Assembly: GCF_000737315.1 (NCBI RefSeq)
Contig: NZ_JMCB01000003.1
Location: 186,001 to 250,000 of the forward strand
Direction: 5' to 3'
Source: Hyalangium minutum
Lineage (GTDB): Bacteria > Myxococcota > Myxococcia > Myxococcales > Myxococcaceae
Length of the DNA stretch: 64,000 nucleotides
This document shows positions 21,922 through 62,116 of the stretch, piece after piece (within the stretch, counting starts at the first letter, position 1; each line of letters starts with the position of its first letter). A program made the position numbers and the translations under genes. The notes beneath the pieces were generated by a model, which worked only from the letters and a program-made list of their open reading frames with translations, was not told the origin of the DNA and made no database searches.

Positions 21922-21922
21922 T

Positions 21923-24169: not shown

Positions 24170-24900
24170 AAGCGCGGTCCGCCACGCAGCCGGGCGAAAT
24201 ATTCCTCGCGTGAGAGGGCACCTCGGGTCTCCAGCACCTCGAGGAGCGCGCTCAGCGAGCGGGCCTGGTTGGCCACCATCTGCTGCAGATCCGCCACTTG
24301 CTGCGTGAGGACGTCCACGCGCTCCTGAAGCTCCGCCTCCCGATGCGAGGAGGGCCGGGGTGTGGGTGGCGGGGTGAACTCGTATGTGGGCTCGCGGAAC
24401 CCGAACTGCTCAGGGTTGGCCGTCGAGTTAGACGCGCCACCGTAGTAGTACTTCCGGATGGCCCGCTCGATGGCCGACGCGCTGCTCACCACCACCTGGA
24501 TCTTCTGGTTGGTGTGGAAGGCCAGCTCCTGCAGCGCGTCCACGTTCGTCGGATCCGAGCTGGCCAGCGTCAGCGTCTTGTGCGCCACGTCCACGGCGAC
24601 GGGGAAGACGCTGTAGCGCTCGGCCAGATCGATCCGGAAGAGCTGGAGCAGGTGCTCGGGCGGCGTCAGGGTGTCCAGCTCCATCGCGGGGATGTGCAGC
24701 TGGCGGGAGAGGGCGTGGACCATGGAGCTCTCGTCCACGAAGCCCATCTGCACCAGCGTATGGCCCAGCTTGCCGCCCCACTTGCGCTGCTCGGCAAGGG
24801 CTGAGCGAAGCTGGGTCTCGGTCAACAGGCCGGCGTCCATGAGGATCTCGCCGAGCCTCTTCTTTCGACTGGGGGGAGGATTCGACGCGGGAGGGCTCAC
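24166..24900 (-). CDS. Stand-alone MshEN / T2SSE_N domain protein (candidate c-di-GMP receptor)
   Basis: RLGEILMDAGLLTETQLRSALAEQ and KLGHTLVQMGFV motifs, then ASSDPTN T2SSE_N core; no ATPase domain. Confidence 0.85.
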   Translation of the reverse strand: MSPPASNPPPSRKKRLGEILMDAGLLTETQLRSALAEQRKWGGKLGHTLVQMGFVDESSMVHALSRQLHIPAMELDTLTPPEHLLQLFRIDLAERYSVFPVAVDVAHKTLTLASSDPTNVDALQELAFHTNQKIQVVVSSASAIERAIRKYYYGGASNSTANPEQFGFREPTYEFTPPPTPRPSSHREAELQERVDVLTQQVADLQQMVANQARSLSALLEVLETRGALSREEYFARLRGGPRF

Positions 24901-28758: not shown

Positions 28759-28893
28759 GTCGCTCCCATCGCTGATCTCGCGGACCGGATCCAGCGAGGC
28801 ATTTACCTGTAGCCAACATACAACGGGAAGTCCTAGGGTCTTCACTTCCGGTCATAGGAGGCGTGGAAGGAGCCTGTGGCTACGGGAGGTTGT

Positions 28894-29787
28894 GTGCGGC
28901 GCTGTCTCGGGTGCCTGATCGTCATCGTGGCGGCCTGTACCTCCGAGGCTCCCAGCACGGCTGGGGCCGACGCGGGCCGTCCCGTGGGCACCGTCGTGGG
29001 CCGCTTCGCAGGAGCCGAGGTCCTCACGGCCGAGGAGGTCTCGCGCGAGGCGGCGCGGCTGCCCCCCGCGCTCCGGGAGCAGTTCGAGACTCCCGCCGGC
29101 CGCCGTGAGTTCGCCCGCTCGCTGATCGACAAGCGCCTCCTGGTGCGCGAGGCCCAGCGCCGGAAGCTGACCGAGGATCCCGAGCTCCGCCGTCAGGTGC
29201 GCGAGTTGGAGGAGCGGCTGGCGGTGCAGGCGCTGCTGGCCCAGGAAGAGGCCGCCGCCGGGAAGCCCTCGGAGCAGGAGCTCCGAGCCTGGTTCGACTC
29301 GCACCGCGCGGAGCTGGCCCGGCCGGAGCAGGTGAGGGTGGGCCGTATCCTCGTGAACGTGGGCGCGAAGGCCTCCGAAGCGGAGCGCACCCGGGCCCGG
29401 CAAAAGGTGGAGGCGGCGGCAGCGCGGCTGCGGCGCGGCGAGTCCCTGGCGAAGGTGGCCCCGGAGGGTGAAGGCCCCGAGCGGATGAAGGGCGGAGAGC
29501 TCGGGCTGGTGGTCCGTGGAGGCGGGCTCGAGCCTTCCCTGGAGCAGGCCGCTTTCGCCCTGGAGCGCCCAGGCGCTGTGTCCGCGGTGGTGGCCCTGCG
29601 CGAGGGCTTCGCGGTGCTCACGCTCCTGGAGCGTAAGCCGCCGCGCGTGCCCACCTTCGAGGAGGTCCGCGCCGAGGTGGAAGGCCGCTTCGCTCCCGCG
29701 CACAAGCGGCAGATGTTCGATGCGCTTCTGGAGCGGCTGCGCCAGGAGGCCGGTGTCGAGCTCGTGGAATCCCGGGAGGCCCCATGA
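28894..29787 (+). CDS. Parvulin/PrsA-type foldase lipoprotein 2 (degenerate active site)
   Basis: GTG after GGAGG; lipobox IVAAC; GRILV, GGELG, EQAAFAL, GFAVL (both parvulin His replaced). Confidence 0.82.
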   Translation: MRRCLGCLIVIVAACTSEAPSTAGADAGRPVGTVVGRFAGAEVLTAEEVSREAARLPPALREQFETPAGRREFARSLIDKRLLVREAQRRKLTEDPELRRQVRELEERLAVQALLAQEEAAAGKPSEQELRAWFDSHRAELARPEQVRVGRILVNVGAKASEAERTRARQKVEAAAARLRRGESLAKVAPEGEGPERMKGGELGLVVRGGGLEPSLEQAAFALERPGAVSAVVALREGFAVLTLLERKPPRVPTFEEVRAEVEGRFAPAHKRQMFDALLERLRQEAGVELVESREAP

Positions 29788-32700
29788 GCTTACCGGGTGG
29801 ACGCATGCTGCGTGCCGCCGCGCTGCTCGCGCTGGTGCTGCCGCTCACGGCGTGGTCCGCCACGGTGACCGCGGCCTTTCCCCTCGTTCCCCTGAGGCCG
29901 GGCGCTACGACCGCGGAGGTGGGGGTCGAAGTCCAGGGGCCCGCGGAGCAGGTGCTGATCTCGGTCACGGGCCAGTCCGCGTCCCGGGGATCCTTCGCCT
30001 CGCTGGCCAACGTGGTGGTGGATCGGGATCAGGCCGGGGCCGTGTCCTTCCATACGCTCGTGACGTTCTCCCAGCCGTTCCCGGAGGATGGCGTGCTGGA
30101 GGTGGTCGCCCGGCCTGTGGGAGACGGAGAGGACACCTCTCTCACCACGCGCTTCGATGCCGCGGCCCCGCCGCCTCGCTTTGGCCCAACGCCCCTCCGT
30201 GTGCGGGCCGATCTCGACAACCAGACGATCATCCTGGAGCTGGCCTACGCGGGGAACGCGGTGGCTGCCGAGGCCTCCGTGGTGGGCGCCTCCGCCGAGG
30301 AGCTTCGCCGCGTCCAGGGCAGCCTCGAGGACGTCGAGCCCGTCTCCTTTGTCCAGGCCCGCCGCCTCCTGGCCCGGCCCTCCACCGCTACGCCGGGCCG
30401 CATCGTCTTTGCTGTTCCCCTGGGCACCGCGCCGATCCCTCATGACGGCGTGGTGATCGCGGATGTGGCGCTGAGGGATGCCTTCGGCCGCACGGTGCAC
30501 ACCTCGGCCGTCGAGTTCACCCAGGCCACCGCGTTCGATCCCGTGGTGGGTGTGTCCGTGGAGCCCTCGCCGCTGCTGCTCTCCGAGGGCTTCGGCCAGC
30601 GCGTGCCCCTGCAGGTAGCGGGCAGCTTCGCCATCGCGGGTGAGGTGGATCTGTCCGGTGCGCACCGGGGCGTGCAGTACCGCTCGCTGGACGAGGGCGT
30701 GGCCTCCGTCACCGAGGATGGTCAGGTGGTCGCTCGCGCCAATGGCGAGACGGACATCGAGATCTCCTACGCGGGCTACACCGCCACCGCGCATGTGGTG
30801 GTGGACTCCTCGGCGGTGGTGGAGCGGCTGGAGGTGATGCCGGAGGCTCCCGTCATTCCGCGCGTGGGAGGCTCGATCCGGCTGGGCCTGGAGGGCGTGC
30901 TGAGCGACGGGCGCCGGGTGGATCTGTCCTCCCGCACGCTGGGCACCACCTGGAGCAGCCTGGATCCCAGCGTGCTCACCGTCCACTCGGATGGGCGCGC
31001 GGTGGGCCTGCGCCCGGGCACCGCACGCGTGGAGGCCCGCAACGCCGGCTACTCCGCCCTGCGCGTCGTGGAGGTGCAGGATGGGCCTCCCGAGATCAGC
31101 CTCTCCGCGCCATCTCAGGTGGTGGAGGGTGCCGACTTCGAGCTCAAGGCTCGCGCCCAGGACGATGTCGCGCTGGCCTTCGTGGAGTTCCTTGTCAACG
31201 GGGTGGTCACCACGCGGCTGACGGCCCCTCCCTTCACGATCAAGCTGCGCGCCCCTCCCGTCGCGGGCGGAGAGATGGTGATCGGGGCGGTGGCGGTGGA
31301 CTCGCATGGCTCGCGGACCCGGGCCACGGACGTCACCTTGAAGGTGCAGCCCGGGCAGGGCGCCAGCTCGAAGACGATCGTCTATGAGACGCCCCTGCCG
31401 GGTGCGCTGCTGCTGGAGGGACTGCCCCACACGGTGAGCCTCACCAGTGGGGACGCGCGCAGTGGCACGCTCTCTCCACAGGACTTCCAGCTCGTCCGCT
31501 ACTACGCGGATGGGGCGCTCCTCGGCACGGTTCGCACGCCGCGCGTCGAGATGCGCAACCTGGAGGAGGATCCCACCGAGCCGCCTGAGTACGTCGCCGT
31601 GCCGCTGTGGGAGCTGAGCTATGTGCCGCGCGCGGGCACCGCCGGCACGGTCGTGGCGCTGTACGCCGAGGCTGTGGATGCCCGGGGTGCCACGGCTCGC
31701 GGGGCCACCATCCTGGTTCGGATCGCGCGGGATGGGCCGCCGCTCGTCACCCTCCGGAGTCCCTCGGGGCCTCGGGTGCAAGCCACTGCGGGCCGCCCCG
31801 TGCAGCTCACGGGCCTTGTCGAGGACGACACCGTGACGCTCGGGGTGGAGCTCTCCCTGTTGGTGGATGGTGCCCAGGTGAGCAGCACGCGGCTGGTAGG
31901 CGAGGGGCTCGGGGGCACCCGCGCGGGCTCCGCGCCCTTCTCGATCTCCTGGACGCCTCCCGTCTCCAGCATCGGCCGGCTCGTGCGGCTGCAGTTCATG
32001 GCCCGGGATGTGGGGGACCACGAGAGCCGCGCCTCACTGGAGGCCTCTGTCGTCGCGGATGCGCCTCCTCAGATCTCCCTCCAGACGCCACCGCCCGGCA
32101 GCCAGGTGCTCGCGGGCACGACGCAGTTCCTCACGGCCTCGGTGGTGGATGACAGCGCGGGGCCTGTCGAGGTGACCTGGCGCGTGAACGGCGTTCCCGT
32201 GGGGGCGTCGCGCTCGCCTCCGTACCGCACCTCCTGGTCCGTCCCCACGTCGGCCGCCGGGAGCACGCTCCAGCTTCAGGCCACCGCGCGGGACTCCACG
32301 GGCAACGAGGCCCAGGCCAGCGGAGAGCTCTTCGTCGTCAGCGACACCACGCGCCCCAGCATCTCCCTCGTGGTGCCGCGCCCGCTGGCGGAGGTGCCGG
32401 AGACACAGGATCTGGTGGTGTCCGTGGCGGGACAGGACGATGCCACCGTCAAGAAGGTGGAGGTGCTGCTGGAAGGGGAGGTGCTGGCCACCGACGATGA
32501 CCCCGGGCCCAACGGAACCCAGCTGGGCTCCTTCCTCACGCACACCCTGGTGCGCTCCGCCCAGCTCATGGGCCGCCAGCAGATCCGGCTGGGAGCGCGC
32601 GCGTATGACGCCTCGGGGAACGTGGGCTCGGCGCCCGAGGTGCTCGTCAAGGTGCTGCCCGATGCGCCGCCCACCGTGCGCTTCGTGCTCCCCGCGGCCA

Positions 32701-56700: not shown

Positions 56701-59700
56701 TGCGCCGGGCCTCGCTGCCCACGGCGGGAGCGGTGCGCCGTGTGAGGCTGGAGGGGCGGCTGGCCCTGGTGAGCGAGGGCTCGGCGGGAGTCGAGCTGTG
56801 GAATGTCTCCCAGCCCGCCGCGCCGGTGCTCCTGGGCAAGCTGTCCACGCCGCGCGCCGAGGACGCGGTGGTGGCCGCGGGGCACATCGTCGTCGCGGAC
56901 AGTGTGGCGGGCGTAAAGGTCTTCTCCCTCCCCGCGGCTGGGGTGAACCCGGTGGTTCGGGTGGTGCCGGACGCGTCCAGCGTGGAGGCGGGGTCCTGGC
57001 TGGAGGTCTCGGCGCGGGTGTCGGGCGTGCAGGTGGATACGGCCGAGCTGCTCGTGGAGGGGCAGGTGCTCAGCCGGATGGACGAGCGGGCGGCGGTGGG
57101 CCGCTACCTCGTGCCAAAGCAAGCGGTGGTCGGCCGAGAGCTGGCGGTGCAGGTCCGGGCGCGCACCGCCTCCGGAGCCGAGACACTGTCGGCTCCGGTC
57201 TTCGTGAGGGTGTCAGCGCCCACGAACCTGCCGGAGATCGTCCTCTACCCGAACTCGCCCAACTCCGGCTGGTCGTACTACTCCGCGAGCAGCATCTCCG
57301 TGTCCGCGGTCTACGGGGGGGCCCTGGCCCCCGTCTCGGCGCGGGTCCGCTGGGCGGGACAGGACCTGGGAGCGCTGACGGTCATGGACACCTCCATCCA
57401 TGGGGAGCTGCGCATGCCGGTGGTGGGAGCGGACACGACGGGGACGCTGGAGTTCGTGCTCGTCGATGCGGCGGGGCGGATCAAGACGGCCTCCGTCCCG
57501 TCCATCAGGGTGCTGGCTCCCCAGGATCCGCTCCCCCAATCCGTCTACGGGCTGCCCTCCCGCCTGTACTCGGCGCCCTATGACAACGCCTTCACGGCTC
57601 AGGCCTACTGCTACACTTGGTGCAACGTGCGCGTGGAGCGCAATGGCGTCACCATCGCGAGCACCCTGAGTACCTCCCCGTACACCGGGTGGCGAAGCCT
57701 GCCAGTCTCGCTGGTGCTTCCGGGAGAGACCACTGGAACGCAGCAGACGCTGACGATCGTGGCCGAGGACTCGGCAGGCCGTCAGGTCCGGCAGGAGCAG
57801 CGCTACACCGTGCTCCGGGATGATCTGGTCCCGTCGGTGTCCCTCTACGCGCCGTACTCCGCTTCCGAGGGCGCGACTGTCTCCGTCTCCGCCTACGCCT
57901 CGTTCCCACCGGGGCATCAGATCCGGTCGCTGCGGTTGTTGGCCAATGGGGTCGAGATCGCCTCCGTGGTGGGCCCCACGCTATCGGGCGTGCCCTATAC
58001 GTTCCCCAGTGTCAGCGTCACCTCGACCGTCCGCTTCGAGGCGATTGCCACCGATCACCTGGGGCGCGAGGGACGCGCGGAGCAACTCGCCCAGGTTCTT
58101 CCAGACGCGCCGCCCAGCGCATCTATGTATGCGTCCCCAACGCCTGTGCAGGGCTACCCGATCTACGCGTGCATCAATGCCGCGGATGACGTGAGGCTCA
58201 CGGCCGTGACCTTCAAGGCGGGAGAGGAGACGTTGTGGAGCTGCACGAGCGGCTGCTCGGCCTACTTCTCCACGTCCTTCTCCAAGTGCGTCCAGAGCGC
58301 GTCTCGCTACACAGGGAGCGAGATCGTCCTGAGCGCGGAGCTCACCGACAGCGTCGGCCATACTGTCACGGAGACGCGGCCCTACGCGGTGGCGCAGAAC
58401 CAGCCGCCGACGGTGACGCTAACGTCCAAGAGCTATCTGGTGGCCGGACAGGGGGGGACCCCTGTGTACGCGAGTGCCTATGATGAGGCCCACATGCAGT
58501 CGCTCAAGGTGCGGGTGGGCGACACCCTGATCGCGCAGAGCACCTCCTCCTACTATGCCCAGAGTGGTCTCTCCTGGAGCGGTTCCTACACGCCCAGCTC
58601 TCCGGAGTCGTTCGTTCTCGAGGCGGTGGCGGAGGATGGGGCGGGCCTACAGACCGTCCTGCGCAAGCAGGTGCCTGTCTTGCCCGCGGGGTCGGGGCAG
58701 AGCTGTGAGAAGCCCGTCCCGATCGGCATGGACCTCACGCTGAGGCCGCCTCAGGTGCAGCTGCAGAGCACGTTCTACTCGCGGTGTGGGACCTTCTATA
58801 CGGGCTCGTGGCACACCCTGCCGTTCGACGGGCCCGTCGAGGAGATCTCCTTGAGGGCCTATTCCGACTCTTGGTACTGGCCAACCCTCATCGTGAAGGA
58901 CGGCTGTGACGCCTCGGCGGCGCAGTTCTGTCCATATTCCTCGTCGTCTTCCGATGTCTCCACGCGCGCCACCTCGCTCTCCTCCCAGGCGCGTGTCTTC
59001 CTCTCTCAGGTCACAGGGGACGTTTATGTCTCCTTCGCCCGGCTGGGCATGGGCGCCCGGTGCATCCCGGGCTCTACCTCCGTGGTCTGCTCCAACAGCG
59101 TCTGCCGTGAGCAGAGCAGTGGTGAGTACCGATGCGCTCCCGAGGCCTGCAGGGATGGCCTGGACAATGACGGCGATGGGCGCGTGGACTTCCCAGCGGA
59201 GCCGGGCTGCACGTCCGCGACGGACGACGACGAGACAGACCCCGTGCCGCTCCCCACCTGCGCCAACGGGGTGGACGAGGATGAGGATGGGGCCATGGAC
59301 TGGCCGGCGGAGACGGACTGCCCCTCTGCCTCCAGCAACGGGGAGCACCCGACCTCCTGCCAGGTGACGCCGCTGACCCTGCTGGGCTCCCGCATGCGGA
59401 TCGACTTCTCTCAGGCCTCGAATCTGGACGATCTGGTGTGCAGCACCTCCGGCTCGGGGCCAGACCAGGTCGTGAGGGTGGAGGTGCCAGGCCAGGCCTC
59501 GCTCTCTGGATCGCTGATGGAGCCGTACGGGTACCCAAAGACGCTGGCGCTCCGAAAGAGCTGCACGGACGGAGGAGCGTTCCTCGCCTGTGCTCCGGCG
59601 GAGTGGCAATCGGTTTGGGATGATGGACGTTGGGTATCTCAGTCTGTGGCCATGACGAGCGCGGAGGTGGGGCCCGGCTCCTACCTGTTCGTGGCGGACT

Positions 59701-61250
59701 CCTCGCTGCCCACCGGGTACGGCGCACCCTTGTTCCAGGTCCAAGGGCAACTCGCGGCGGACCAGCCCTGTGATCCGGCGCAGCCCTGGTTCGCCTGTCA
59801 GCAGGGACAGCGCTGCCTACCCTCGGTGGACGGTTACCAGTGCCAGGACGCCGCATGCGCCAGCGCGCAGGACGAAGATAGCGATGGGTGGAGCGGCTAT
59901 CCCCAGGATCCGGGCTGTACGTCGCCGGATGATCAGGACGAGTCGGACCCCGAGACTGCACCTGCCTGCTCCAACGGTGCGGACGACGACGGCGACGGGC
60001 GTACGGACTGGCCAGCCGATCCGGGCTGCAGCTCCGCCTCGGGGAACACCGAGTCGGGAGATGGCGAGCGGTGCGAGGCACCTGCGGAAGTGACTGCATC
60101 CACCACGGTGGTGGACTTCTCGGAGGCGGCCTCGGACGAGACGCTGCTCTGTGATGCCCGGCCTGTCGGCGACAAGGTGTTGAGCGTCCGGATGCCAGGG
60201 GCTGGCACCATGGTGCTCACTTCCAGCCCGGAGATCTCAGCGCTGGCGCTTCGTCCGGCCTGCGCGGAGGAGCATGCGGACGTGAGATGCCTCTCGACCT
60301 TGACGGCGCCCTTGTACACCAAGGTGCCGTTGGAGGCAGGGGCCTATTCGATCGTGCTCAAGGGGACAGGGACCGCGACGCTTCGAGTCTCGGGCTTCTT
60401 GAATCACGGCGCTGGCTGCGATCCCGCGATGCCTTGGTTCAAGTGCGTGGCTCCGGCGTCCTGTACCATGGGCCCCACGGGCGCCACCTGCGTCGCTCCG
60501 GTGTGCTCGAACGGGCTGGATGACGATGGCGATGGCAAAGTGGATTTCCCGTCGGATCCAGGGTGCAGCTCGATGTGGGATATGGATGAGTCGGATCCTC
60601 CGGCGACTCCCGCCTGCCGTGACGGTGTGGACAACGATGGAGACGGGCTCACGGACTGGCCCGTCGATCCAGGCTGCGAGATCCGGGACGATCTGGATGA
60701 GGCCGATCTCTCCACGCCTCCTCAATGCTCCAACGGTGTGGACGACGACGGTGACGGCCTGATCGACTACGGCTCCGATCCGGAGTGCTCCAGTGCGGGC
60801 TCGGACAGCGAGGGTCTCTTCCAGGGCGTGCTGGCACAGCACCTGTCCTCGCAGACGTCCGGCTATTTGCCCTTCACCGCCACCAGCCGGCTCCCGCTGA
60901 TGACCTGCTTCGAGTCCAACCGGGAGCTCAAGAAGGTCTTCCAGTTCGTGGCGCCCAATACGGGGCGGTACATCATTCCTCCCAGCTGGCCCTCGGGCAG
61001 AGTGCGGTTCTCCGTCGACGTGGTCGGGCCCGACCGGGGACAGATCATCTGTGCCAACGACTCCGCGCAGCTGTCGCTAAGACAGGGGGACGAGATCATC
61101 GTCACTGTCGGAGGGGATGACACCTATGGTGGGAATGGCACCGGCGGGGTGATGCAGATCCACTTCATGTACTCTGAACCGCAGCAGATCGTCTCCCCAT
61201 GGCTCCCACCCCCTGAGCTCGATTGGCAGTGGACGGGCGTCATCCCATGA
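29784..61250 (+). CDS. Giant 10,488-aa secreted protein: Ig-like repeats, IPT/TIG, SbsA/Big_5-like, LVIVD-type beta-propellers, C-terminal Cys/Asp repeats
   Basis: Uninterrupted 31.5-kb ORF with strong GC3 bias; signal peptide ...LPLTAWS/A; repeated D..PP.V....P, P.GG..V.V.G.GF and LAVVD[LV]S.P..P motifs. Confidence 0.95.
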   Translation: MSLPGGRMLRAAALLALVLPLTAWSATVTAAFPLVPLRPGATTAEVGVEVQGPAEQVLISVTGQSASRGSFASLANVVVDRDQAGAVSFHTLVTFSQPFPEDGVLEVVARPVGDGEDTSLTTRFDAAAPPPRFGPTPLRVRADLDNQTIILELAYAGNAVAAEASVVGASAEELRRVQGSLEDVEPVSFVQARRLLARPSTATPGRIVFAVPLGTAPIPHDGVVIADVALRDAFGRTVHTSAVEFTQATAFDPVVGVSVEPSPLLLSEGFGQRVPLQVAGSFAIAGEVDLSGAHRGVQYRSLDEGVASVTEDGQVVARANGETDIEISYAGYTATAHVVVDSSAVVERLEVMPEAPVIPRVGGSIRLGLEGVLSDGRRVDLSSRTLGTTWSSLDPSVLTVHSDGRAVGLRPGTARVEARNAGYSALRVVEVQDGPPEISLSAPSQVVEGADFELKARAQDDVALAFVEFLVNGVVTTRLTAPPFTIKLRAPPVAGGEMVIGAVAVDSHGSRTRATDVTLKVQPGQGASSKTIVYETPLPGALLLEGLPHTVSLTSGDARSGTLSPQDFQLVRYYADGALLGTVRTPRVEMRNLEEDPTEPPEYVAVPLWELSYVPRAGTAGTVVALYAEAVDARGATARGATILVRIARDGPPLVTLRSPSGPRVQATAGRPVQLTGLVEDDTVTLGVELSLLVDGAQVSSTRLVGEGLGGTRAGSAPFSISWTPPVSSIGRLVRLQFMARDVGDHESRASLEASVVADAPPQISLQTPPPGSQVLAGTTQFLTASVVDDSAGPVEVTWRVNGVPVGASRSPPYRTSWSVPTSAAGSTLQLQATARDSTGNEAQASGELFVVSDTTRPSISLVVPRPLAEVPETQDLVVSVAGQDDATVKKVEVLLEGEVLATDDDPGPNGTQLGSFLTHTLVRSAQLMGRQQIRLGARAYDASGNVGSAPEVLVKVLPDAPPTVRFVLPAANTRATIGTPLELIAEADDDVAVSSVEFFADGNSSCRATLPPYRCTITVTGPARTLHLRAVASDAGGRSSSAEVAVQVSEDREPPLVAFRSPSEGSFTFAGRNLSVEVAASDDVGVRDVRLELDGQTVGTQSGGVVDGLYRLFRWQVPIPAGAAGHTLAFKAVATDTSGLTRERLLEVRARRDEAPAVSLTSPAPNSFYKEGEDVRLVVTVADDEGVIGLVGLSGGRRQGTLAQSGPLLDVSRPQALTVRAPSIFRGEPPTVGAEARDTAGQSGVATVMLNVARDLEPPSALMISPLPPATGHLRVNEGGAFSLRVEVEDDVRVVRVAAVVDGQELPVVNGREPLGPQNERFEEVRVQDPVMPGQIIVSRRYLGTFAGTASLAQYSVGLHTLAARAYDAGGNATTTPALSFEILEVQDLAPPRVTLTLEGGPDERTCVAGAPMKLRVSATDDVSIREASVTFEGQPVTIRNPPERSPRNWQEEIPFQFPPLGTGGRRTVTFLARVTDGAQHTGVVSRTCELTPDGPPQILVVSPTARAALTEEGTEPVQVDVSDDVGVRRGLRVLSTSAVAVPGIGSFEVTATAAHEGLGVPSATLIPGDGPGFSVEALEGRLLISPPGEGQGTGTTAPGRLRLNVEPSPAGHGALAQVRFRYVVKPGHEGSTALQSFRSAFPDGVGSVTLSAPAFSADLSFPSQDIEMEEVDIQLSKASANAEELAVTRLGLRGWGTPQLQLRAEAAGERVAVQRWNTGVAPSRPGQVKRIDEAVWLPRGQAPRDSQLTVLAEDVAGLVGRVAIPIVARTDTDPPTASIVSPGNGASVVEDTVFEVQVSAQDNARLDQLELWVDGQSRQVMRVGPGPSGSPQAHRFSLSLPLPASGYPAALSVVARDGAGNATASDTAYVRVIPDVAPSVTFQSLTSAVESFTRTELDSGYVVMLQGVPATLGMLLEDDAGLASMRVQFGDQVVKEESFTGAPLTAGRQVTFTPPVGRDGAPVVLLVSLTDSAGHTRQTRLLIESRRPRPPALALAAPTPGATIAEGSIQLLFDAVAVDDTGVDHVQLFINGQPALILTRGEPIAWNLDPQSGAVVVADPALRQAVASLPPEDQDLQRLRHYRGQVKLPPGFVALVPGRTDAALQLRTIAADKEGHETVLDQPLRIEADVATPLVEVLRPVLGRNVVEGTSVLVEVSARDNVLVDRVEILAGPSASELRVVHTAGGFPPTNAVPGSPFDVYAPLVQYAFTVPTLAQLGSTVPVPYFVAARARDISGNWTAPADFVIQPIEIIQDQPPGVSILSPADGTPAVANSTITVSVMAEDDVAVGNVRLEVDGTPLPVTLHAPPFSFHVPVPDRAGELRLRAVAVDSGGHQVGSQVVILPLRDDLAPTVAVAQPRPEARLTEGRDFALVVAAQDDVAIRSVEVLVEGGLAGPLRLVASNLPYSFRVPLPPGSAGRTLRIVARARDSAGHESVAPEVTALAVADTSRPTVAWLRPAAGSQALEGSVVELEVDARDDVAVNSLELRLNDQPLAIMPTPPFRMTYHVPAQGGGQALVFSAIARDPSGNQTVETRRLEIAEDEPPSVSVIAPTRLVVGNPALLRAQASDDVAVTEIGFHVGSDPAALSEVARRYQLPYEFRYAATEADVGKVLTIRGRAMDLAGHEAWSVPVQALVVPDTPPTVAVRKPLAGEAIFEGQRLRLEVEATDVEGPIKQVAFFVDGRKVHVATTPAGIPGSPNLFATSYSPPVGSGNRLLRITAVAVDSANQETESAPVVVGTVRDTVPPETQLVDPMVWELVTEAEPVEWTAAALDESAVVGVRFLVDGQQVGPPSTVPRPGPSNRPLYYGTWLPPSGAAGQTRTLTAEATDPSQNVGRAEPVTVELGMRPEPAVELVVEPYARRQAGMAADGEGLVIHGALLKDVPLPPPNDTVKRDEGRLALARLDLNGLAPLGTVKVTGSPVSQTLLGRLALVAMGPVFDPVGKKTIPAQLQVVDLSNTAVPRLRGVVDLPSDDVHQVVARDRLAFVANGTSGVAVLELGNPDAPQRAFTRPTVGPARGVAVTDQWLLVAAGSGGLRVLDVRDPYLRELGFVALPGEANRVEVVGSRAYVGCSNAQAPLAVVDLSRPAQPRLMSLLSHAPRRPDLLASEVTDVAVSGGVALVTTAITDQDAEPVKGILSASTVKADGAASTFVRANLPGARDVLFSQGRPVALLGDSAMGAFTLPRLAVTDVSPVDGTGQVPPTAQVTVTFSRLLQGASVTEQTVLLRAQDAVLGPVVPATVTVNETRILVAPRAPLPTNTEIFLTVLPTVTGEGGVTLGERFVSRFRTSPVDGLPPQVADVQPPAGPVDGGTRVRVWGLHFAPGARVLFSGQEATQVQVAADGRSLDAVTPPNLEGAVVVTVVNPNGLEGSLLGGFLYLQILDVSMVVPATGSLAGGNLVELSGSGFQRGATVRFDGVPATDVRVLSPGRISLRTPPGHFGTVDVRVDNPDGRYVVKPDAFLYSNLVVSRVLGRHIPDPQYDGPIRPAEKLPQGVPRAVVMQGGLAWLLSDGTAALQAHSPEELLQDSIQAAVTLVDVSDPDNAAVRSGVSIAPPYQPRALAVRGTTAYVAADAAELPYVDVVGEGGPSLLVVDASVLQAPRMVTAVPFEGTARAVAVADDLALVAAGAGGLAVFSVADPLRPVLTGSIQSMRVRGEVRAVNVVDVAASGRYALVRAGTNAGTFTLVLDLATPGIEVVGEASDLGPMALQGRRGLTLGNGQIRTLSFSPPTWPRNLVGMSSLVGGTPVTVAVGPHVGAAGTEVSRPGNSGSGKLEVSLSADPSRPRAVDAVDLYPAARFGGVAVERDVAVISISALLTKKGEVVADPTLALGSDGLAVVRMPFLMGMRSQPADGDTEVPPSTPLRLEFNREVAGASPQTVRLIRQDGSVNGVVEPAEIQTLGRTVLLLPAQPLAPSTTYRVVADQLTDALTRAEMAGPFYLEFSTASSSAAMPVSISGLTPREGPAAGGTLVTVTGTGFEPGATVRFGGVPATQVTVSEDGTQLTARTAANTAGAATLEVTNPSGSVARRLGAFLFTQPLSVLAAAPGRGPASGGTRVILSGTGFSSTGTVQVRFGGVPALRTRVLGLNRLEVYTPRGLRGTVDIQVTNPDGSQATLEDGFIFDQPGGASVALSDRPVDVVVIGDSALVLQRGGLSVVDLSGLYLKGPLKDTPIPPDLVDGLVDVDNDRKDDRLVSFLPIPDALSLAYPSTWGHRLFVGTGGWDSKLQQWTAGEVLEVAIADLAHPAISARTAAVEGPVFGLDVKDERLLAATGQKGLSSFDRSYAPFLVGQLPMQGAAQSVAGSAGMAVVGVGQRDATSFAVSAGALRIVSTEASPSLRGALPLNIQRARWKGDVAVVAAGDAGLVLVSAANPDQPQVLASVLVGGFAWDVRLQGNLAYVAAGTAGVAVVDLTDLLHPRVLYHVTGARGGTAKLVEMTAGGRLVSMRDRGTQGWSVDFGRPSELAVVSASVAPDEVVPLSLPSVTVTLSAGLLHTSAPEAFSFTANGAPVPGTLEAGTPELPVSTLVFRPSEPLPSGAELRLALGTSLRSLLGDALIAPFEVRFFAAGGTGERPQLLQVVPRVGPSEGGTEIELLGTGFVPGTTVRIGAAPALVLSLSSTRMTVRVPPGEPGLADVVVVHPSGVTARRSGGYFYSAPLFASASIPRFLNPKGGSTVRVTGRGFLPTWSSPLGSTRVLIRGLPARSVSVESTTQLVAVAGPGSFGDADVELVAADGLQRASSPSPVGYGLPFSGKVVGASVRPVALAGNPALPLLPFAAAGASVEGNTFPQPYTGPMTGGGLVPESFRMVAYDVTRVGRPELAGASVVDPPDHDVDYLIGSLPYLAQRELPLPEVELMPDSFDVALRGTQLLVANGASGLAVIDASGTTLEQWPLLGRGGIGSVLGQEYATRLLATPTGAWVFSNPLEDNLLPEEIPCKSPTDEHYPAAGSGGQLQLFDTRSPSDPVLLGSIGSGSAQEPYGATVAGGRLLVAMGNHAGVIYCTETPFPPPPWASLTTGRRTRFLGLDPSDDYRSEDAPIIMMKTPHGALELYDSAGVGAQRLARRPYPYSLTDVVVVRDVAIASAAEFGLIFFDVRPDNPQAPQELLRLPFDQSLSNTPGHPERLRLIGDLLFVAASSGSVYVLDVSDPRHPEFLSGGNTEFAYDVLPVGDRLMLASRQELTELSMPFLLPLSTTPERDALVPPSLSQLEVRFNRPLAPATVNDISVQLIGPSGPVPLELSVVAEHATLTYAVRAQLPEEGLEPGATYEVRIASTVADQRGGGMIRPFRTAFRTGAAGSHAPRIDAVQPSAVSMAGGQQVVIQGSGLSGVASVRIGGATASFTAAGDTELHVTVPPSTRPGPADVRIEDAGGPWSLLPHGVLYLSPLASAHASLVPDHGPVEGGTEVKVSFSGASPVAPGTRVFIGDREGVNVDVVSLSTLRFTTPRPDGPGLVPVKLERPGEVSETVGYFSYDLPTGTTVDLPGFPPRETSEVVLSGDLLFAGVPTAGYEGLELFNIRVPEHPVRLGGLRTEGAVRGLDARGALALLATDAFGLVAVDVQDTARPFTVGRGATAGLATGIRLEGNVAHVSVTQMDGGAGYVQTFDVSQPSLPLLSTTPLTEDALALDHAPGRFYALTSNVRTGQPDGLRLTVYTRQGQRLGGVVVDATPRSYAELVRSRLTVRGGRAYVTLGSRLYVFDMSDETAPQVLQSTELGAPARGLTWAGGSLLVSTTGSSTLVTVPPTDLLVVGTSPVNGALASPLTSIRVDMSLPVREDTVTAGTFEVVQVGSAGPVPVPGHREVVFATRGSSLVFTPEDPLEPGAQIEVKVEGVLGFDTRPLAHPASFAFTVAGEDALQPWVERLEPASGLFTDFTATTVRGAGFRQGVTVRIAGQNATVVSVQEDQLGIVVPPSLTSAGPASVEVIDPSGLSAVRLGGFLYREPLRLALLSPDRAPQQGGVAVELRGTGFMPGLVVRFGGTGSFQVDVPSMERAVAVAPPHAQGLVDVEAVLGSQSAVKARSFLYGTGAVSRLPTPPVRDVRVEGTVAYVALGGETEIVGLDAEGHLITLEQRRKTDSGGLMVADLSEPTVAREIRRVNVSAQGGVRRMARAGNTLYLAAGSAGVVAVDVSQPANASETLRLSVQGEAVDVVTAGSLIFVADGSGVRVFRTGETEQPMLVAQRALPGGASALALYGGLLLVSNASATDARLYVLDARRGDLAPLAQEAHLPLSAPARHIAVEGTRAFVSLGRAGQVAIVELADPTAPAPAGTLVLKDELHQGWTSAEQTLVAGDVVWVAGGGGKVQRFAALVGQQPQWLETASVLGDAKALARSGRYLMAGTLLLDVNGRPVEMPLADTRDAAGTLTGGLVSVALDHLELRGTVPVAGAVVQVGVVPEVLLSALPDMATAGAVRLEGTDGVEVRVARQGRADTEGGRLALIPQSPLAVGTDYVLRVGGTLADLAGRPLGTDVGVRFRTGPIASPEQPVITAMSPVTGLEAGGDTAVLTGEGFMPGCQVWVGDTLASGVTVSSDGGRITLIVPPGPAGAAAVRVRNPNGLEALQLGLYRYLVAPELTQVSPAQAPFNSRQRVVLTGKGFAATTQVTFGGRPALHPVMDSQGRISVEVPDDVTGVVEVAVATPMPGGALVARRPDGFTYTLKPLGGVGGNTEALAVAGRVLLAARAGRLVAFDLTRPGDLPEVANVPGVTSAGGLVVSGDEAWLAGQGEVVRYALEGCGAGLPVSCPLQVVERIPLVASGVASVAAGQGSAYVTVAGGSDVVLLGRVDGATRVVAQVNVGPGVVRGVAMAGPVLAVLVQGSQSSRLELRDVADGSLTLVGEVPGLYWTVNRLAAEGTRVAVASGAGVRLYETAEPAVPVELGRFEGQGSAYTVALSGPWALASGDFGLAWLDTTQGLKRRTSGSTYGWAGNVAVGAGVAVAASAYELRAFELPYPTVTGQEPSPGGALPREAAVSVTLADRLPPSVVQGTAMELVGPAGAISGTRTVQGSAVLFRPSAVLTPGERVQARVTLGATPYVGGTVLGPWTWSILPSAEAPSLRVDALVPDHGDVSGGYPVVLAGAGFDAQTQVWFGTRAATVVPPVSTDAIHVLAPASPVPGPVRVRVSPGVAGTPVDVPGGFVYLAPLAISRVTPPRVDLGGGAVTVEGTGFNRSLTARLGGLVAPVSDFTPTSFKLSVPAGPSGWLALEVAQAGTPPVTLAQAVLRADGVAPTVTAWEPLDTVGTGQVPLNSIFTVRFNEPIDPATATHVRLVRQGGTVPESGTHTVAPDGLSVTFTPAAALPSTTAFTLSAAGVADLFGNAIANTAAARKDFRSRDVVPPNVYVRLESSTEPLAPGTLLAAEVSWSFRVVASDDSGQVSLRQLWVDGAAVSVDWDGKATYRWPAIMSSRPSTLKVRAEDSAGNGTESEVTVQVVEDMPPTVAITQPSTPVVQVEQGVSLTVALAASDNHGVSAVELRLDGVPIKRASSLTGTNATLSHVLYLPTQGTYQLTALAMDDRGQLTSSESVSVQVLPDTTPPQLAWVLPMAGTKLIGGGRYPLQVSATDLNGVAEVSFRIDGQLVATRTAPPWSMDWDAPAVTSAGTRLLEARARDAQGNEAGASQTVTVAPPSTSRPTIVLDGFSTSYGYPEGTAVTVRARVTSEIPLQSVRLSLGAETVTLTQPPWQLTFVAPRVPPPSQLVRLRGTAVDLLGRESFPVEYDVTVQDDGRQPVLALDMNPQGPSLLGGSTLQVGGLDGGVLTGTVVRVSEVLQPAETDGGYTLPFEPEAAPVRVSARMDAWDGGMVTLERQGTLTAFANGATVSVAAADEPVLDLATSGPWEWVARDQSGGHTRLELRDAATQALTAERSLDGTAVAVAFERGRAVVALRTGGRGRVDMMSVPALETVGSFSVRRIPRALETTSFGLAIGTDEGLELWSSGGMLASRLPLGDVLGVSAEGDRLAVLTNSTLYEVDASVPHAPALVASVPVAGATGVVALADARRCVVGATARCFRVEGTALTLQGEARLPDTAIAADGPGPWLLAGTASGLSVVDARGAPSMAGYYPALAGRVAAGDGRIVAAAPGRSSLLKLRRSVGAPTVHLELPPSAAPGARVPVVASVEGLSDPRDGYTAELRVRGTAVQVLKGRLPQSVDLPRDGTAAQVALRVVDLAGHEALAQGTVALVDDGAGPALAALQARAEVPSGAFFSLAAVPADPARVASVEYSVDSTVLGRADAPALAWRLRAPTVSTDTAFTVSAVALDAQGRRGAPVQASVWVRAGTGAALPTVSLARVGTGSIQEGTEVRVRATLTPSVPVAEVRFKMDGEEQQRLMLPPYEAVLRMPVGTGSRGVTVEAVAVDDQGRESAAALLPLTVVDDLTPPVVALEVDPSGEVLTAGSRVRATAIASDGGALESWSVRALLANVELASGGGRLDFTVPASTPAGTLVEIVATARDVAGNVATSRVTKTVLAPVLPDGGVVVAGDFVGADRLTLRGDFVYATTPRGLAVGRVRWGETPTIEPVSFLATDVAPSSLAVQGPWAVLVLPGRGLSIVNIADPAQPRVRGTLAGTFTKALAGDGLYVQGNSLFELDLEVPSTPVLRNMAVSATAVDGTADGVVFNSYSYLMVRARLTSGLSGYLSLLWPVGVPQTARWNDGKLLVGTDRSLAVLVRSGDSLGVAQEVPLPAGVRAMAVADGRVWLACTDGKLRWVDVRNPTAAQVIAQEALPARALEVSGGLMLATTAQGIFVRRLPNLGAAGSALSTPVGGLTLDDAPRAVTSFRRGVLVAAGLAGVQRIVLDDPSHPSRVSQSVAGLALKQVERTGEQVFTLNGTTLSIHVEQWDGSLVRDGGASDRLAALGSVERFAVSPRRLWAVSGGTVSSMGLPSVDQKVSLLLGSATLDVAGDETRAVVALGRAGAAVVLVDGAGTLRLGAMIPEVHTDAVAVDGDLALLGGPSGLAVVDLSAASGPVRRASLPTAGAVRRVRLEGRLALVSEGSAGVELWNVSQPAAPVLLGKLSTPRAEDAVVAAGHIVVADSVAGVKVFSLPAAGVNPVVRVVPDASSVEAGSWLEVSARVSGVQVDTAELLVEGQVLSRMDERAAVGRYLVPKQAVVGRELAVQVRARTASGAETLSAPVFVRVSAPTNLPEIVLYPNSPNSGWSYYSASSISVSAVYGGALAPVSARVRWAGQDLGALTVMDTSIHGELRMPVVGADTTGTLEFVLVDAAGRIKTASVPSIRVLAPQDPLPQSVYGLPSRLYSAPYDNAFTAQAYCYTWCNVRVERNGVTIASTLSTSPYTGWRSLPVSLVLPGETTGTQQTLTIVAEDSAGRQVRQEQRYTVLRDDLVPSVSLYAPYSASEGATVSVSAYASFPPGHQIRSLRLLANGVEIASVVGPTLSGVPYTFPSVSVTSTVRFEAIATDHLGREGRAEQLAQVLPDAPPSASMYASPTPVQGYPIYACINAADDVRLTAVTFKAGEETLWSCTSGCSAYFSTSFSKCVQSASRYTGSEIVLSAELTDSVGHTVTETRPYAVAQNQPPTVTLTSKSYLVAGQGGTPVYASAYDEAHMQSLKVRVGDTLIAQSTSSYYAQSGLSWSGSYTPSSPESFVLEAVAEDGAGLQTVLRKQVPVLPAGSGQSCEKPVPIGMDLTLRPPQVQLQSTFYSRCGTFYTGSWHTLPFDGPVEEISLRAYSDSWYWPTLIVKDGCDASAAQFCPYSSSSSDVSTRATSLSSQARVFLSQVTGDVYVSFARLGMGARCIPGSTSVVCSNSVCREQSSGEYRCAPEACRDGLDNDGDGRVDFPAEPGCTSATDDDETDPVPLPTCANGVDEDEDGAMDWPAETDCPSASSNGEHPTSCQVTPLTLLGSRMRIDFSQASNLDDLVCSTSGSGPDQVVRVEVPGQASLSGSLMEPYGYPKTLALRKSCTDGGAFLACAPAEWQSVWDDGRWVSQSVAMTSAEVGPGSYLFVADSSLPTGYGAPLFQVQGQLAADQPCDPAQPWFACQQGQRCLPSVDGYQCQDAACASAQDEDSDGWSGYPQDPGCTSPDDQDESDPETAPACSNGADDDGDGRTDWPADPGCSSASGNTESGDGERCEAPAEVTASTTVVDFSEAASDETLLCDARPVGDKVLSVRMPGAGTMVLTSSPEISALALRPACAEEHADVRCLSTLTAPLYTKVPLEAGAYSIVLKGTGTATLRVSGFLNHGAGCDPAMPWFKCVAPASCTMGPTGATCVAPVCSNGLDDDGDGKVDFPSDPGCSSMWDMDESDPPATPACRDGVDNDGDGLTDWPVDPGCEIRDDLDEADLSTPPQCSNGVDDDGDGLIDYGSDPECSSAGSDSEGLFQGVLAQHLSSQTSGYLPFTATSRLPLMTCFESNRELKKVFQFVAPNTGRYIIPPSWPSGRVRFSVDVVGPDRGQIICANDSAQLSLRQGDEIIVTVGGDDTYGGNGTGGVMQIHFMYSEPQQIVSPWLPPPELDWQWTGVIP
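31075..38330 (+). repeat. Run of about 20 or more divergent bacterial Ig-like domains in the giant protein
   Basis: Recurring D..PP[TS]V.[IL]..P...A.A.DD.[AG]V..VE...A.A.D..G motif at about 100-aa spacing; no exact DNA repeats. Confidence 0.8.
38340..51470 (+). repeat. Seven-fold higher-order module: beta-propeller + Big_5-like + IPT/TIG + IPT/TIG
   Basis: Big_5-like units start near 39350, 41330, 43190, 45360, 47035, 48930 and 50655; each is followed by two GG..V.V.G.GF IPT units and preceded by an LVIVD-like region. Confidence 0.8.
59148..60788 (+). repeat. Seven Cys/Asp-rich CxxGxDxDGDGxxDxPxDPGC repeats in a 2-2-3 arrangement
   Basis: First Cys at 59148, 59259, 59856, 59967, 60504, 60615 and 60726; 111-nt spacing within each cluster. 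Confidence 0.9.
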
Positions 61251-62116
61251 GGCCCTCAAGCGGAATAGGCAGCTGGCTCGTGTTGGCCCTCGCGGTGCTG
61301 TCCGGGTGCGATGACTCGCGAACGGTGGCGAAGGTGGGGCGCACGGGCCTGACGGTGGAGGACGTGACGCAGCTGCGCGCCGCGCAGAGCCCGAGCGTCC
61401 GCGCCGCGCCGGAGCAGACGCTGGAGGTGCTGGTGGATCGCGCCCTGCTGGCCGAGGAGGCCCGGCGCCAGAAACTGCACGAGCAGCCCACGGTGAAGGC
61501 CCAGCTCGCGGCCGCCGAGCGGGAGCTCCTGGCGCATGCGGTGCTGGAGCGGGCGGTGGCTCCCAGCGTGACGGACGAGGCGCTGCGCGCGCGCTACGAG
61601 GCCGCGCGCTCCCGGCTGGAGCGCCGCGAGGTGCACGTGGCCCAGATCTTCGCGCGGATGCCCGAGGGCTCTGATGAGAAGACTCGGCGCCAGGCGCAGG
61701 TGCGCATCAACCAAGCCTATGCCCGGCTCGCGGGCGGAGAGCCTTTCGAGACCGTGGCGCGCGAGCTGTCCGAGGACTTGGTGAGCGCGCCCCAAGGAGG
61801 AGAGCTCGGCGTGGTTCGGGAGGGAGGAGTGGATCCAGCGTTCTTCGCCCAGGCCGTGGCGCTGGCCGCAGGCGCTTGGTCCAAGCCGTTCATCACGCCC
61901 TTCGGCTGGCACGTGGTGAAGGCGCTTGAGGCGTCGAAGACGGTGGTGCCCTCCTTTGATGAGGCGAGAGGTGTGCTGGAGTCCGAGGCGCGCCAGGAGG
62001 CCCAGGCGAAGCTGATGGAGCGGCTGCGTCAGGAGATCTCGGTCCGTCGCTACCCGGAGCGGCTCAAGCTGGCAGAGGAGAAGAGCAAGCCCCAGGGCGA
62101 GGGGGAGGCGAGATGA
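61247..62116 (+). CDS. Parvulin/PrsA-type foldase lipoprotein 3 (partly degenerate)
   Basis: ATGA overlap with giant gene stop; lipobox VLSGC; AQIFA, FETVARELSEDLVSAPQGGELG, FGWHVVK. Confidence 0.87.
   Translation: MRPSSGIGSWLVLALAVLSGCDDSRTVAKVGRTGLTVEDVTQLRAAQSPSVRAAPEQTLEVLVDRALLAEEARRQKLHEQPTVKAQLAAAERELLAHAVLERAVAPSVTDEALRARYEAARSRLERREVHVAQIFARMPEGSDEKTRRQAQVRINQAYARLAGGEPFETVARELSEDLVSAPQGGELGVVREGGVDPAFFAQAVALAAGAWSKPFITPFGWHVVKALEASKTVVPSFDEARGVLESEARQEAQAKLMERLRQEISVRRYPERLKLAEEKSKPQGEGEAR

Follow-up and report, generated by a model that had tools for sequence, protein, structure and literature searches.

What might a bacterium do with a protein of more than 10,000 residues? The question is posed by a locus in the genome of Hyalangium minutum DSM 14724T (JMCB00000000; family Cystobacteraceae/Archangiaceae, PMC5441343). 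We analysed a 64-kb stretch of this genome (JMCB01000003.1:186001-250000 of GCA_000737315.1, hereafter called the window; G+C ~70%), 49% of which is occupied by one open reading frame (ORF), the giant gene. The giant gene is real and conserved, and it encodes a Sec-targeted, megadalton, all-beta modular protein. Its neighbours encode peptidyl-prolyl isomerases (PPIases) and an Rhs-type protein. We give a probability of roughly 0.5 to the reading that the giant is an extracellular, PPIase-folded fibre which would provide adhesion or recognition for the co-encoded Rhs toxin, itself independent of a type VI secretion system (T6SS). The structural part of this reading is well supported; the functional link to the toxin is suggested by the conserved structure of the operon.

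An intact frame

A preliminary description of this DNA, which had taken it to fit a myxobacterium (as the source confirms), reported one intact ORF of 10,488 residues filling half of the window. Its coordinates were exact:

29784..61250, plus strand: giant gene; ATG start; 31,467 nt; 10,488 residues

The frame has 0 internal stops, and the NCBI annotation of the source record likewise calls a 10,488-residue product. We checked the frame because DNA of ~70% G+C yields long spurious ORFs. The GC content at codon positions 1, 2 and 3 is ~0.73, 0.53 and 0.88 in each 3-kb tile, a coding-type pattern that holds all along the frame. Third-position GC (GC3) ranges from 0.79 to 0.91 along the gene, and in the last 1.5 kb the three values go down to 0.63, 0.54 and 0.79. 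Two long ORFs lie opposite the gene:

43302-52286, minus strand: antisense ORF of 2,994 residues; fails the GC3/GC2 coding filter
36375-41060, minus strand: antisense ORF of 1,561 residues; fails the GC3/GC2 coding filter

They are therefore not genes; the GC3-rich sense frame gives rise to both. That a high-GC genome can give a spurious ORF of 2,994 residues is a point in favour of taking the giant ORF itself for an artefact, be it a chance high-GC frame, a chimeric assembly or a decaying pseudogene; its codon-position GC is a point against, and its orthologues, discussed below, are another.

A stalk of immunoglobulin-like domains and propellers

The domain map was drawn from Pfam on tiles of 1,000 residues, NCBIfam, hidden Markov models (HMMs) built from the protein's own repeats and from orthologues, and profile-profile comparison (hhalign). 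From the N terminus to the C terminus it reads, with immunoglobulin abbreviated to Ig:

29784..29861, plus strand: cleavable Sec (type I) signal peptide; residues 1-26
29862..31088, plus strand: family-specific N-terminal region; residues 27-435; two Big_2 stretches (Pfam)
31089..38252, plus strand: ~21 Big_7-type Ig-like domains; residues 436-2823; ~100-residue period (Pfam Big_7, own HMMs)
34455-35111, plus strand: variable, poorly conserved insert in the Big_7 array; residues 1558-1776
38253..51464, plus strand: seven supermodules, each an LVIVD propeller (~300-450 residues) followed by Big_5, TIG and TIG; residues 2824-7227
51465..55124, plus strand: Big_5 and ~9 Big_7-type domains; residues 7228-8447 (own HMMs, profile-profile)
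55125..56951, plus strand: two LVIVD-type propeller regions; residues 8448-9056 (self-BLAST to the supermodule propellers; hhalign 96-98%)
56952..58703, plus strand: ~6 Big_7-type domains with Cys pairs, the fastest-evolving part; residues 9057-9640
58704..60815, plus strand: acidic, Cys-rich, variable tail of three PPC/collagen-binding-like β-sandwich modules alternating with 7 acidic double-disulfide repeats; residues 9641-10344
60816..61250, plus strand: terminal domain of 144 residues, fold unassigned, low model confidence; residues 10345-10488

The signal peptide, read from the sequence, is MSLPGGRMLRAAALLALVLPLTAWS with the cut before A, and it has no lipobox. An equivalent A-x-A signal is present in every orthologue, and after it comes the conserved mature N terminus VVT(A/G)AYPLAPLRPG. 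The mature giant has 10,462 residues, a mass of 1,084 kDa, an isoelectric point of 4.9 and 839 prolines. Residues 27-435 are 43-55% identical to the orthologues and defined the family in the search of representative genomes; they are a candidate for the cell-proximal end.

The preliminary description had estimated 55-60 Ig-fold domains by counting motifs. Sequence support exists for ~57: 51 units from our own HMMs (29 Big_7-type, 14 TIG and 8 Big_5), the two Big_2 stretches and 4-5 further Big_7-type domains from profile-profile comparison, which gave residues 497-652 their Big_7-type assignment. A few unassigned beta-rich stretches could raise the count. All Pfam matches of Ig-like type are above cutoff (Big_7 up to 176 bits per tile, TIG up to 97.5, Big_5 up to 77.7, Big_2 27.6-30.5). 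At 27-42%, identity in the conservation profile is lowest in the insert at residues 1558-1776, which has a phmmer counterpart in one orthologue only and no Pfam match. No hhalign match to our own profiles was found for residues 27-435, 1558-1776 and 10345-10488.

Propeller regions had been put at about ten. We count nine, possibly ten: seven in the supermodules, two at residues 8448-9056 and a possible one at residues 7701-8095 (hhalign probability 76%). In four tiles LVIVD (PF08309) scores 36.6, 32.7, 25.4 and 24.8 bits, the cutoff being 20.2; residues 2824-3199 reach 41.1 bits. The seven supermodule copies are 22-32% identical to one another in the alignment and are supported by Pfam LVIVD, Big_5 and TIG as well as by NCBIfam CoaZ_rpt_PGGG; the internal TIG units match NF058597, 'choice-of-anchor Z repeating domain', which is a repeat and not an anchor.

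An AlphaFold model of one supermodule (residues 3468-4127) is all-beta, with ~31 strands ahead of Big_5. Its mean predicted local distance difference test score (pLDDT) is 74, being ~90 in the TIG pair and a moderate 50-90 in the propeller part. The best matches of the model in the Protein Data Bank (PDB), found with Foldseek, are plexin and MET ectodomains, integrin alpha-V and PorZ. Moreover, the ~370-residue propeller part superposes on seven-bladed WD40 propellers (template-modelling (TM) score 0.54-0.64 on the target, root-mean-square deviation (rmsd) ~4.7 Å). By these matches the LVIVD repeats are predicted to fold as a β-propeller. The layout resembles that of plexin, MET and semaphorin-receptor ectodomains and of integrin alpha, in which a seven-bladed propeller is followed by IPT/TIG or Ig-like domains. 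At ~10% identity, this is a structural analogy only; unlike theirs, the giant's propeller is of LVIVD type, and the unit occurs sevenfold in one chain.

A variable, cysteine-rich tail

Whereas the rest of the protein is almost free of cysteine, the last ~850 residues hold 40 of its 59 cysteines. Here the motif C-x-(N/D)-G-x-D-(D/N)-D-G-D-G-x2-D-(F/W/Y)-P-x-D-P-(G/E)-C occurs in seven copies. All seven are found by our own HMM, and the NCBIfam model acid_disulf_rpt (NF033662), the sole NCBIfam match in the last 848 residues, covers five stretches at 104.4 bits against a cutoff of 41. The tail has 585 homologues. Among the matches listed these are ~840-1,460 residues long, mostly 1,100-1,460, and those with a named organism usually belong to Myxococcota, including Bradymonadia and Kofleriaceae. 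Several are annotated PPC (PF04151) or Stig1; Pfam gives no PF04151 match at E<=0.01 in the giant's tail. The giant's ~700 residues before the terminal domain are thus homologous, at up to 586 bits, to stand-alone Myxococcota PPC/acidic-repeat proteins of 1,100-1,460 residues (NF033662), themselves uncharacterised; unlike in those proteins, the module array of the giant is fused to a stalk of 9,640 residues.

A sequence search of the PDB with the tail found no relative. In a model built with 44 homologues in the alignment, pLDDT is ~90 for residues ~9,770-10,340. Foldseek matches this model to the tandem collagen-binding domains (CBDs) of ColG (5iku, E=1e-8), to the PPC domain of Bacillus anthracis collagenase (5sv5, TM 0.66, rmsd 3.4 Å) and to Ca-dependent CUB-EGF-CUB arrays. 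The tail is accordingly modelled as having the PPC/CBD β-sandwich fold, and this fold suggests a Ca-stabilised ligand-binding tip.

The terminal 144-residue domain has no Pfam, NCBIfam or PDB match. It is the best-conserved part of the tail relative to a close relative of H. minutum (83% identity; ratio of non-synonymous to synonymous substitution rates, dN/dS, 0.34). We found no C-terminal sorting signal (MYXO-CTERM, PEP-CTERM or the C-terminal domain of the type IX secretion system, T9SS); the C terminus, ...PPPELDWQWTGVIP, has no hydrophobic helix.

Homology between genera stops near residues 9,620-9,640. Beyond that point Melittangium and Stigmatella end instead with a few extra Ig repeats and Corallococcus with one Cys-rich module; the expanded array is present in Hyalangium, its close relative and a fragment from an Archangium metagenome-assembled genome (MAG). 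Base composition shifts in the same region: over window positions 59400-61250 (residues ~9870-10488), which coincide with the lineage-variable tail, GC3 goes from ~0.88 to ~0.78 (0.75-0.83) and first-position GC to 0.63. Perhaps the module array was acquired later; a composition rich in Asp, Asn, Ser and Cys could by itself also account for the shift.

A family frozen across genera

Relatives were sought in species-representative genomes with a scan that used an orthologue alignment; an earlier genome scan, by exact 8-mers of the central 5,000 residues, had found no relative, and a supermodule search of a 5.8-billion-protein set gave 7 matches. The alignment-based scan found the supermodule, 44-87% identical, in 14 loci: two each in Pyxidicoccus caerfyrddinensis and Myxococcus eversor, one each in M. 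qinghaiensis, Myxococcus sp. RHSTA-1-4, Corallococcus terminator and C. praedator, and the remainder in six MAGs. A single frame is open over all the sequence covered in 14 of 14 loci, amounting to 6,900-7,125 residues in the eleven full-length ones, and in nine of them the ORF begins ~9.5-9.8 kb upstream of the match, as does the H. minutum giant. The two giant-family loci of P. caerfyrddinensis and of M. eversor are paralogous, the M. eversor pair lying ~100 kb apart on one contig; such paralogous loci show two N-terminus subtypes, with the ORF opening ~200 nt or ~450-570 nt into the locus.

Orthologues measure 10,033 residues in Melittangium boletus (complete genome), 9,740 in Stigmatella sp. 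ncwal1 and 9,679 in Corallococcus sp. M34. The close relative, assembled independently from reads SRR33780596, has an intact copy of 10,495 residues. Together these answer the worry, raised in the preliminary description, that the assembly might be chimeric. The C-terminal thirds are collinear (residues 6701-9637 of Melittangium against 6702-9633 of H. minutum), and each 250-residue segment has a one-to-one counterpart in every genome covering that segment. Repeat number has therefore been frozen across genera. At the DNA level, Tandem Repeats Finder reports only one trivial 29-nt array, and the top dispersed direct repeats span 30-123 nt at 62-83% identity; at the protein level the internal repeats are 25-48% identical by self-BLAST. 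It is because the repeats have diverged enough in DNA to escape recombination that the architecture is frozen domain for domain. This agrees with the earlier view of ancient, divergent repeats, without exact DNA tandem copies, that resist recombinational collapse: the orthologues of four other genera align at near-identical residue numbers.

The gene had also been described as old and under selection. Indeed, selection is purifying: pairwise dN/dS (Nei-Gojobori) is 0.27 in each 1,000-codon tile over 7,235 codons compared with a metagenomic relative, and 0.31-0.60 over the last 3,304 codons compared with the close relative. The peak of 0.60 falls in residues 9,000-9,640, which are 56% identical to the close relative; for the adjacent PPIase the figure is 93%.

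In two ENA metagenome contigs (ERZ25039597 contig_3132 and ERZ25039575 contig_85604) the orthologue is broken into 7-19 gene calls, with ~30 frame switches per 22 kb, and this would favour an artefact or a decaying gene. The fragmented contig of the dN/dS comparison has 107 indels, mostly of 1 nt. Because the indels are mostly single-base and dN/dS is still ~0.27, we ascribe the frame breaks to assembly error of a long-read-like kind; pseudogenisation is rejected on the same grounds, dN/dS being uniform even against this contig. Intact orthologues in five independent genomes or assemblies, with the frame open in 14 further loci, leave the artefact reading effectively refuted. Family members in public databases are nearly all 'partial' and carry the names 'Ig-like domain-containing protein', 'IPT/TIG domain-containing protein' or 'hypothetical protein'. 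As long-read metagenome assemblies also shatter the gene, surveys of giant genes will undercount the family.

An operon with putative foldases and an Rhs-type toxin

The genes around the giant are these:

27832..28845, minus strand: divergent gene for a lipoprotein chaperone with a SurA-like N-domain and a parvulin PPIase domain (Pfam Rotamase_2, Rotamase, SurA_N_3; lipobox-like Cys)
28876..29787, plus strand: upstream parvulin PPIase lipoprotein (Rotamase_2 E=6.5e-16; lipobox ...IVAAC)
61247..62116, plus strand: downstream parvulin PPIase lipoprotein (Rotamase E=1.3e-18; lipobox ...VLSGC)
62113..64000 and on to ~76,160, plus strand: Rhs-type gene for a probable lipoprotein of 4,682 residues; start in the window, ~12 kb beyond it

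Three four-nucleotide overlaps (ATGA each) join the genes on the plus strand: the TGA of the upstream PPIase gene overlaps the ATG of the giant, the TGA of the giant overlaps the ATG of the downstream PPIase gene, and the TGA of the latter overlaps the ATG of rhs. The annotated start of the downstream PPIase differs from the start taken here, and the divergent chaperone gene probably has its true start at an internal Met (MTERVFLACCVLGLVGGLGC...). All three PPIases and the Rhs protein have lipoprotein-type signal peptides. The preliminary description had linked the giant to a predatory lifestyle. That link is by analogy only, and the evidence points instead to a partnership with PPIases and an Rhs toxin through translational coupling.

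The Ig-like stalk of the Rhs protein consists of Glucodextran_B (seven or more), Big_13 and CarboxypepD_reg and is followed by DUF6531, RHS repeats (E=3e-29 in a direct Pfam scan), a TEN_YD-shell with YD motifs, and PT-HINT. On these domains the 4,682-residue product is classed as an Rhs-type polymorphic toxin on a long stalk. The giant itself contains no RHS repeats, YD shell or HINT, features which sit in this next gene, and no enzymatic, hydrolase or toxin domain was found in any giant tile with Pfam or NCBIfam, in agreement with the earlier remark that no hydrolase domain could be recognised. The effector thus probably lies in rhs and not in the giant. Duplication of the Rhs stalk as the origin of the giant was considered and rejected, there being no BLASTP match at E<=1e-5 between the two.

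The arrangement is conserved. The order giant-PPIase-Rhs recurs in the close relative, Melittangium, Stigmatella and Corallococcus, with Rhs proteins of 4,160-4,714 residues; both ATGA overlaps, giant-PPIase and PPIase-Rhs, are kept in the first three, and Corallococcus has a GTGA variant. Orthologues of the downstream PPIase occupy the equivalent position in 5 other genomes, and the upstream PPIase lies directly ahead of the giant ORF in seven further loci. In Myxococcus sp. CA051A (JABUMS010000005.1:55111-76079), two parvulin PPIase genes 20 nt apart are followed by a gene for a 5,124-residue Rhs protein, and the giant is absent; a divergent SurA-N/rotamase gene stands upstream, at the equivalent position, there too. 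Because CA051A has PPIase-PPIase-Rhs without the giant, PPIase and Rhs look like the core and the giant like an accessory. Judging by the CA051A arrangement, the giant may have been gained between the two PPIases or precisely lost from there.

In Gram-positive bacteria, the lipoprotein PrsA is well established as a foldase that acts on secreted proteins after translocation (PMC10986000). The three flanking genes share parvulin domains with PrsA, SurA and PpiD; an N-domain like that of SurA is present in one, and lipoprotein signals like that of PrsA in all. Their scores stay well short of the NCBIfam equivalog cutoffs for these three chaperones. Each would seem to be a paralogue dedicated to a client, encoded beside its presumed substrate, and not a housekeeping chaperone. 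A sigma-70 promoter scan of the divergent intergenic region gave no match, such a scan being uninformative for a myxobacterium, and terminator matches in that region are at chance level.

How the giant might work

We propose that the giant is a Sec-exported, ~1.08-MDa, all-beta, rod-like extracellular protein, as its signal peptide, domains, intactness and conservation would have it. The chain would leave the Sec translocon unfolded, and two membrane-anchored parvulin PPIases would fold it domain by domain in the manner of PrsA; both would be made from the giant's own transcript by ATGA-coupled translation, for a client with 839 prolines. Tandem Ig adhesins of bacteria span 3-4 nm per Ig domain. 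On this assumption, and with the propellers added, the folded fibre would reach ~200-300 nm, which makes the few hundred nm put forward in the preliminary description a reasonable estimate. Its conserved N-terminal region would be cell-proximal and its PPC/acidic-repeat tail would form a distal ligand-binding tip; the 9-10 propellers along the Ig stalk, in a plexin/MET-like order of propeller then IPT, could serve as interaction platforms. Finally, the conserved operon structure suggests that the fibre may cooperate with the co-translated Rhs lipoprotein, contributing reach, adhesion or target recognition to a contact-dependent, T6SS-independent delivery to neighbours, whether kin competitors or prey. 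A role in recognition would agree with the fast evolution of the distal region and with a tail that varies by lineage.

A number of points weigh against this fibre reading. The Rhs gene of CA051A exists without a giant in cis, so that the linkage could reflect a shared need for foldases alone, and the giant and the Rhs stalk share no specific similarity (no BLASTP match at E<=1e-5). The 64-kb window has no genes for type I, II or V secretion systems (T1SS, T2SS, T5SS) or for T9SS, and the giant has no outer-membrane anchoring device, C-terminal sorting signal or lipobox; since no device for outer-membrane secretion or anchoring was found, surface exposure of the giant is assumed. About 1,500 residues have no fold match (27-250, 1558-1776, 7701-8095 and 10345-10488), and an activity could be hidden there. 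Overall model confidence is moderate, with a pLDDT of 74 for the supermodule and 69 for the tail.

These points lend themselves to other explanations. The giant might be a cohesion protein of the matrix, biofilm or fruiting body with no functional tie to Rhs, the two being neighbours that share foldases. Ig, TIG and propeller content is typical of adhesive and structural surface proteins, the PPC/collagen-binding-like tail is a binding module and not an enzyme, and both the PPIase-PPIase-Rhs locus of CA051A and the dissimilarity of giant and Rhs stalk would follow. However, the order giant-PPIase-Rhs and its four-nucleotide overlaps are kept over four genera, which is tighter than mere sharing of chaperones predicts, and fast distal evolution and a variable tail suit recognition better than they suit a generic scaffold. 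We take this explanation seriously and consider it unlikely nonetheless. A giant that never reached the surface, staying in the envelope as a periplasmic or envelope-spanning structure, would account for a Sec signal without a detectable outer-membrane translocation system or sorting signal, and its partner proteins, all lipoproteins, could face the periplasm. Yet a 1-MDa rod of ~200-300 nm would be hard to fit into the periplasm, extracellular proteins are where Ca-binding-type acidic disulfide repeats and PPC/CBD-like modules typically occur, and large Rhs proteins are thought to be surface-exposed according to PMC10433427; we regard this location as very improbable.

The giant might also be a polymorphic adhesin for self/non-self recognition, on the TraA-like concept, of which Rhs would be one downstream consequence. 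Which neighbours are engaged would then depend on homotypic or heterotypic binding by the fast-evolving distal Ig region and the variable tail. Myxobacterial kin recognition depends on polymorphic surface receptors, as PMC10433427 describes. Residues 9000-9640 are divergent (dN/dS 0.60, and 56% identity against 93% for the adjacent PPIase), tails differ among genera, and P. caerfyrddinensis and M. eversor have two paralogous loci per genome. But the dN/dS values are pairwise and all below 1, and therefore show no positive selection, and identity is uniform over most of the protein, which is conserved one-to-one. We judge a pure recognition adhesin improbable. The four-gene unit could be a previously unrecognised myxobacterial apparatus for contact-dependent toxin delivery, in which a ~250-nm fibre, folded by foldases of its own, would capture and recognise targets through its propellers and variable Ca-binding tip and present, or assist, the Rhs cocoon at the surface. 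This we offer tentatively, with more doubt than belief.

Comparison with known systems

RTX adhesins (SiiE, LapA, MpIBP) and Bap-type proteins are megadalton, acidic rods of dozens of ~100-residue Ig-like domains with a ligand-binding C terminus of Ca-dependent type. The giant is likewise an acidic megadalton rod of Ig-like domains with a distinct C-terminal region of binding type, and its presumed role would be the same, spanning distance and adhering. RTX adhesins carry a T1SS signal at the C terminus; the giant has a Sec signal at its N terminus. Moreover, its repeats are ancient and divergent (25-48% amino-acid identity), where those of RTX and Bap adhesins are near-identical, and it differs from both in its 9-10 interspersed propellers, its bracketing by PPIases and its coupling to Rhs. 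No giant tile has a HemolysinCabind or RTX match. With RTX repeats missing, a Sec signal present and no T1SS genes in the window, identity as an RTX/T1SS adhesin is rejected. No beta-barrel translocator of the intimin/invasin or T5SS kind was found in the N- or C-terminal tiles. We also rejected the giant as a toxin or hydrolase, since Pfam and NCBIfam find no enzymatic or toxin domain. Its all-beta make-up of Ig domains and propellers led us to reject, too, that it partners an ABC toxin in the way of TcA.

The downstream gene has clear counterparts. Like the Rhs4/Rhs5-type proteins of M. xanthus and WapA of Bacillus subtilis, its product has more than 4,000 residues, a signal or lipoprotein peptide, a long stalk, an RHS/YD shell and PT-HINT. 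Proteins of this kind act in contact-dependent antagonism that needs no T6SS (PMC10433427). According to the same 2023 review, M. xanthus isolates have about nine large rhs genes each, and two M. xanthus Rhs proteins of ~4,000 residues act in kin discrimination independently of T6SS and are not documented for predation. The same source counts large Rhs proteins as one of three known kin-discrimination systems of myxobacteria, and presumes those with signal peptides to be surface filaments, with the delivery route unknown and roles in need of further study. Its Rhs section makes no mention of a giant accessory gene or of flanking PPIases.

Giant genes of Omnitrophota adjoin a locus resembling T2SS or type IV pili (T4P) that includes a conserved Rotamase_2 PPIase; their products have transmembrane segments and SecA-like and N-terminal peptidase domains, and genes for c-di-GMP-binding PilZ proteins follow (bioRxiv 10.1101/2023.11.21.568195). 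The Hyalangium locus is similar in its very large gene, its proposed attachment in an antagonistic lifestyle and its adjacent conserved Rotamase_2 PPIase. A second-messenger-type regulator lies nearby in both cases, PilZ in Omnitrophota, and MshEN-domain and cyclic-nucleotide (cNMP)-binding proteins upstream in Hyalangium. Unlike the Omnitrophota giants, the Hyalangium giant has no transmembrane, SecA-like or peptidase domains and no T2SS-like locus, and we found no sequence relationship between them.

Elsewhere in the window

Window positions 21656-24900, 5-8 kb upstream of the operon, encode a TPR protein with two cNMP-binding domains (plus strand) and an MshEN-domain protein (minus strand). 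MshEN is the c-di-GMP-binding N-domain of T2SS/T4P-type ATPases. A regulatory connection of these genes to the operon is pure speculation. At ~10000-14000, directly after a gene for a XerC/D-type tyrosine recombinase (9169-10110), GC is 0.61-0.62 against ~0.70 around it. This low-GC stretch carries minus-strand genes with DUF6310 and DUF5953 and may be a small integrated island. The remainder of the window holds housekeeping genes, and an Rfam scan of the window gave no match.

Significance

Giant Ig-repeat surface proteins are already known, and this gene is annotated, though uninformatively. What is new is a Sec-dependent family with seven propeller-Big_5-TIG-TIG supermodules frozen across genera. 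Also new are the apparently dedicated PPIases that flank it in a conserved arrangement, the coupling to an Rhs toxin and the variable PPC/acidic-repeat tip. A chain of more than 10,000 residues that is exported by Sec makes one ask how it is translocated, how it folds in the periplasm and how it passes the outer membrane. Association of a PPIase gene with a giant gene has now been seen independently in two phyla, Myxococcota here and Omnitrophota (bioRxiv 10.1101/2023.11.21.568195).

Myxobacteria are models for bacterial kin discrimination and predation. How Rhs toxins are delivered to a neighbouring cell independently of T6SS is unresolved according to PMC10433427, and this locus is a concrete, conserved and testable candidate accessory. 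Strains of Corallococcus, Myxococcus, Pyxidicoccus, Melittangium and Stigmatella that carry the family can be cultivated, so that genes could be knocked out and competition assays run in them. If the four-gene unit should prove to be a toxin-delivery apparatus, it would explain how large Rhs proteins are delivered without a T6SS.

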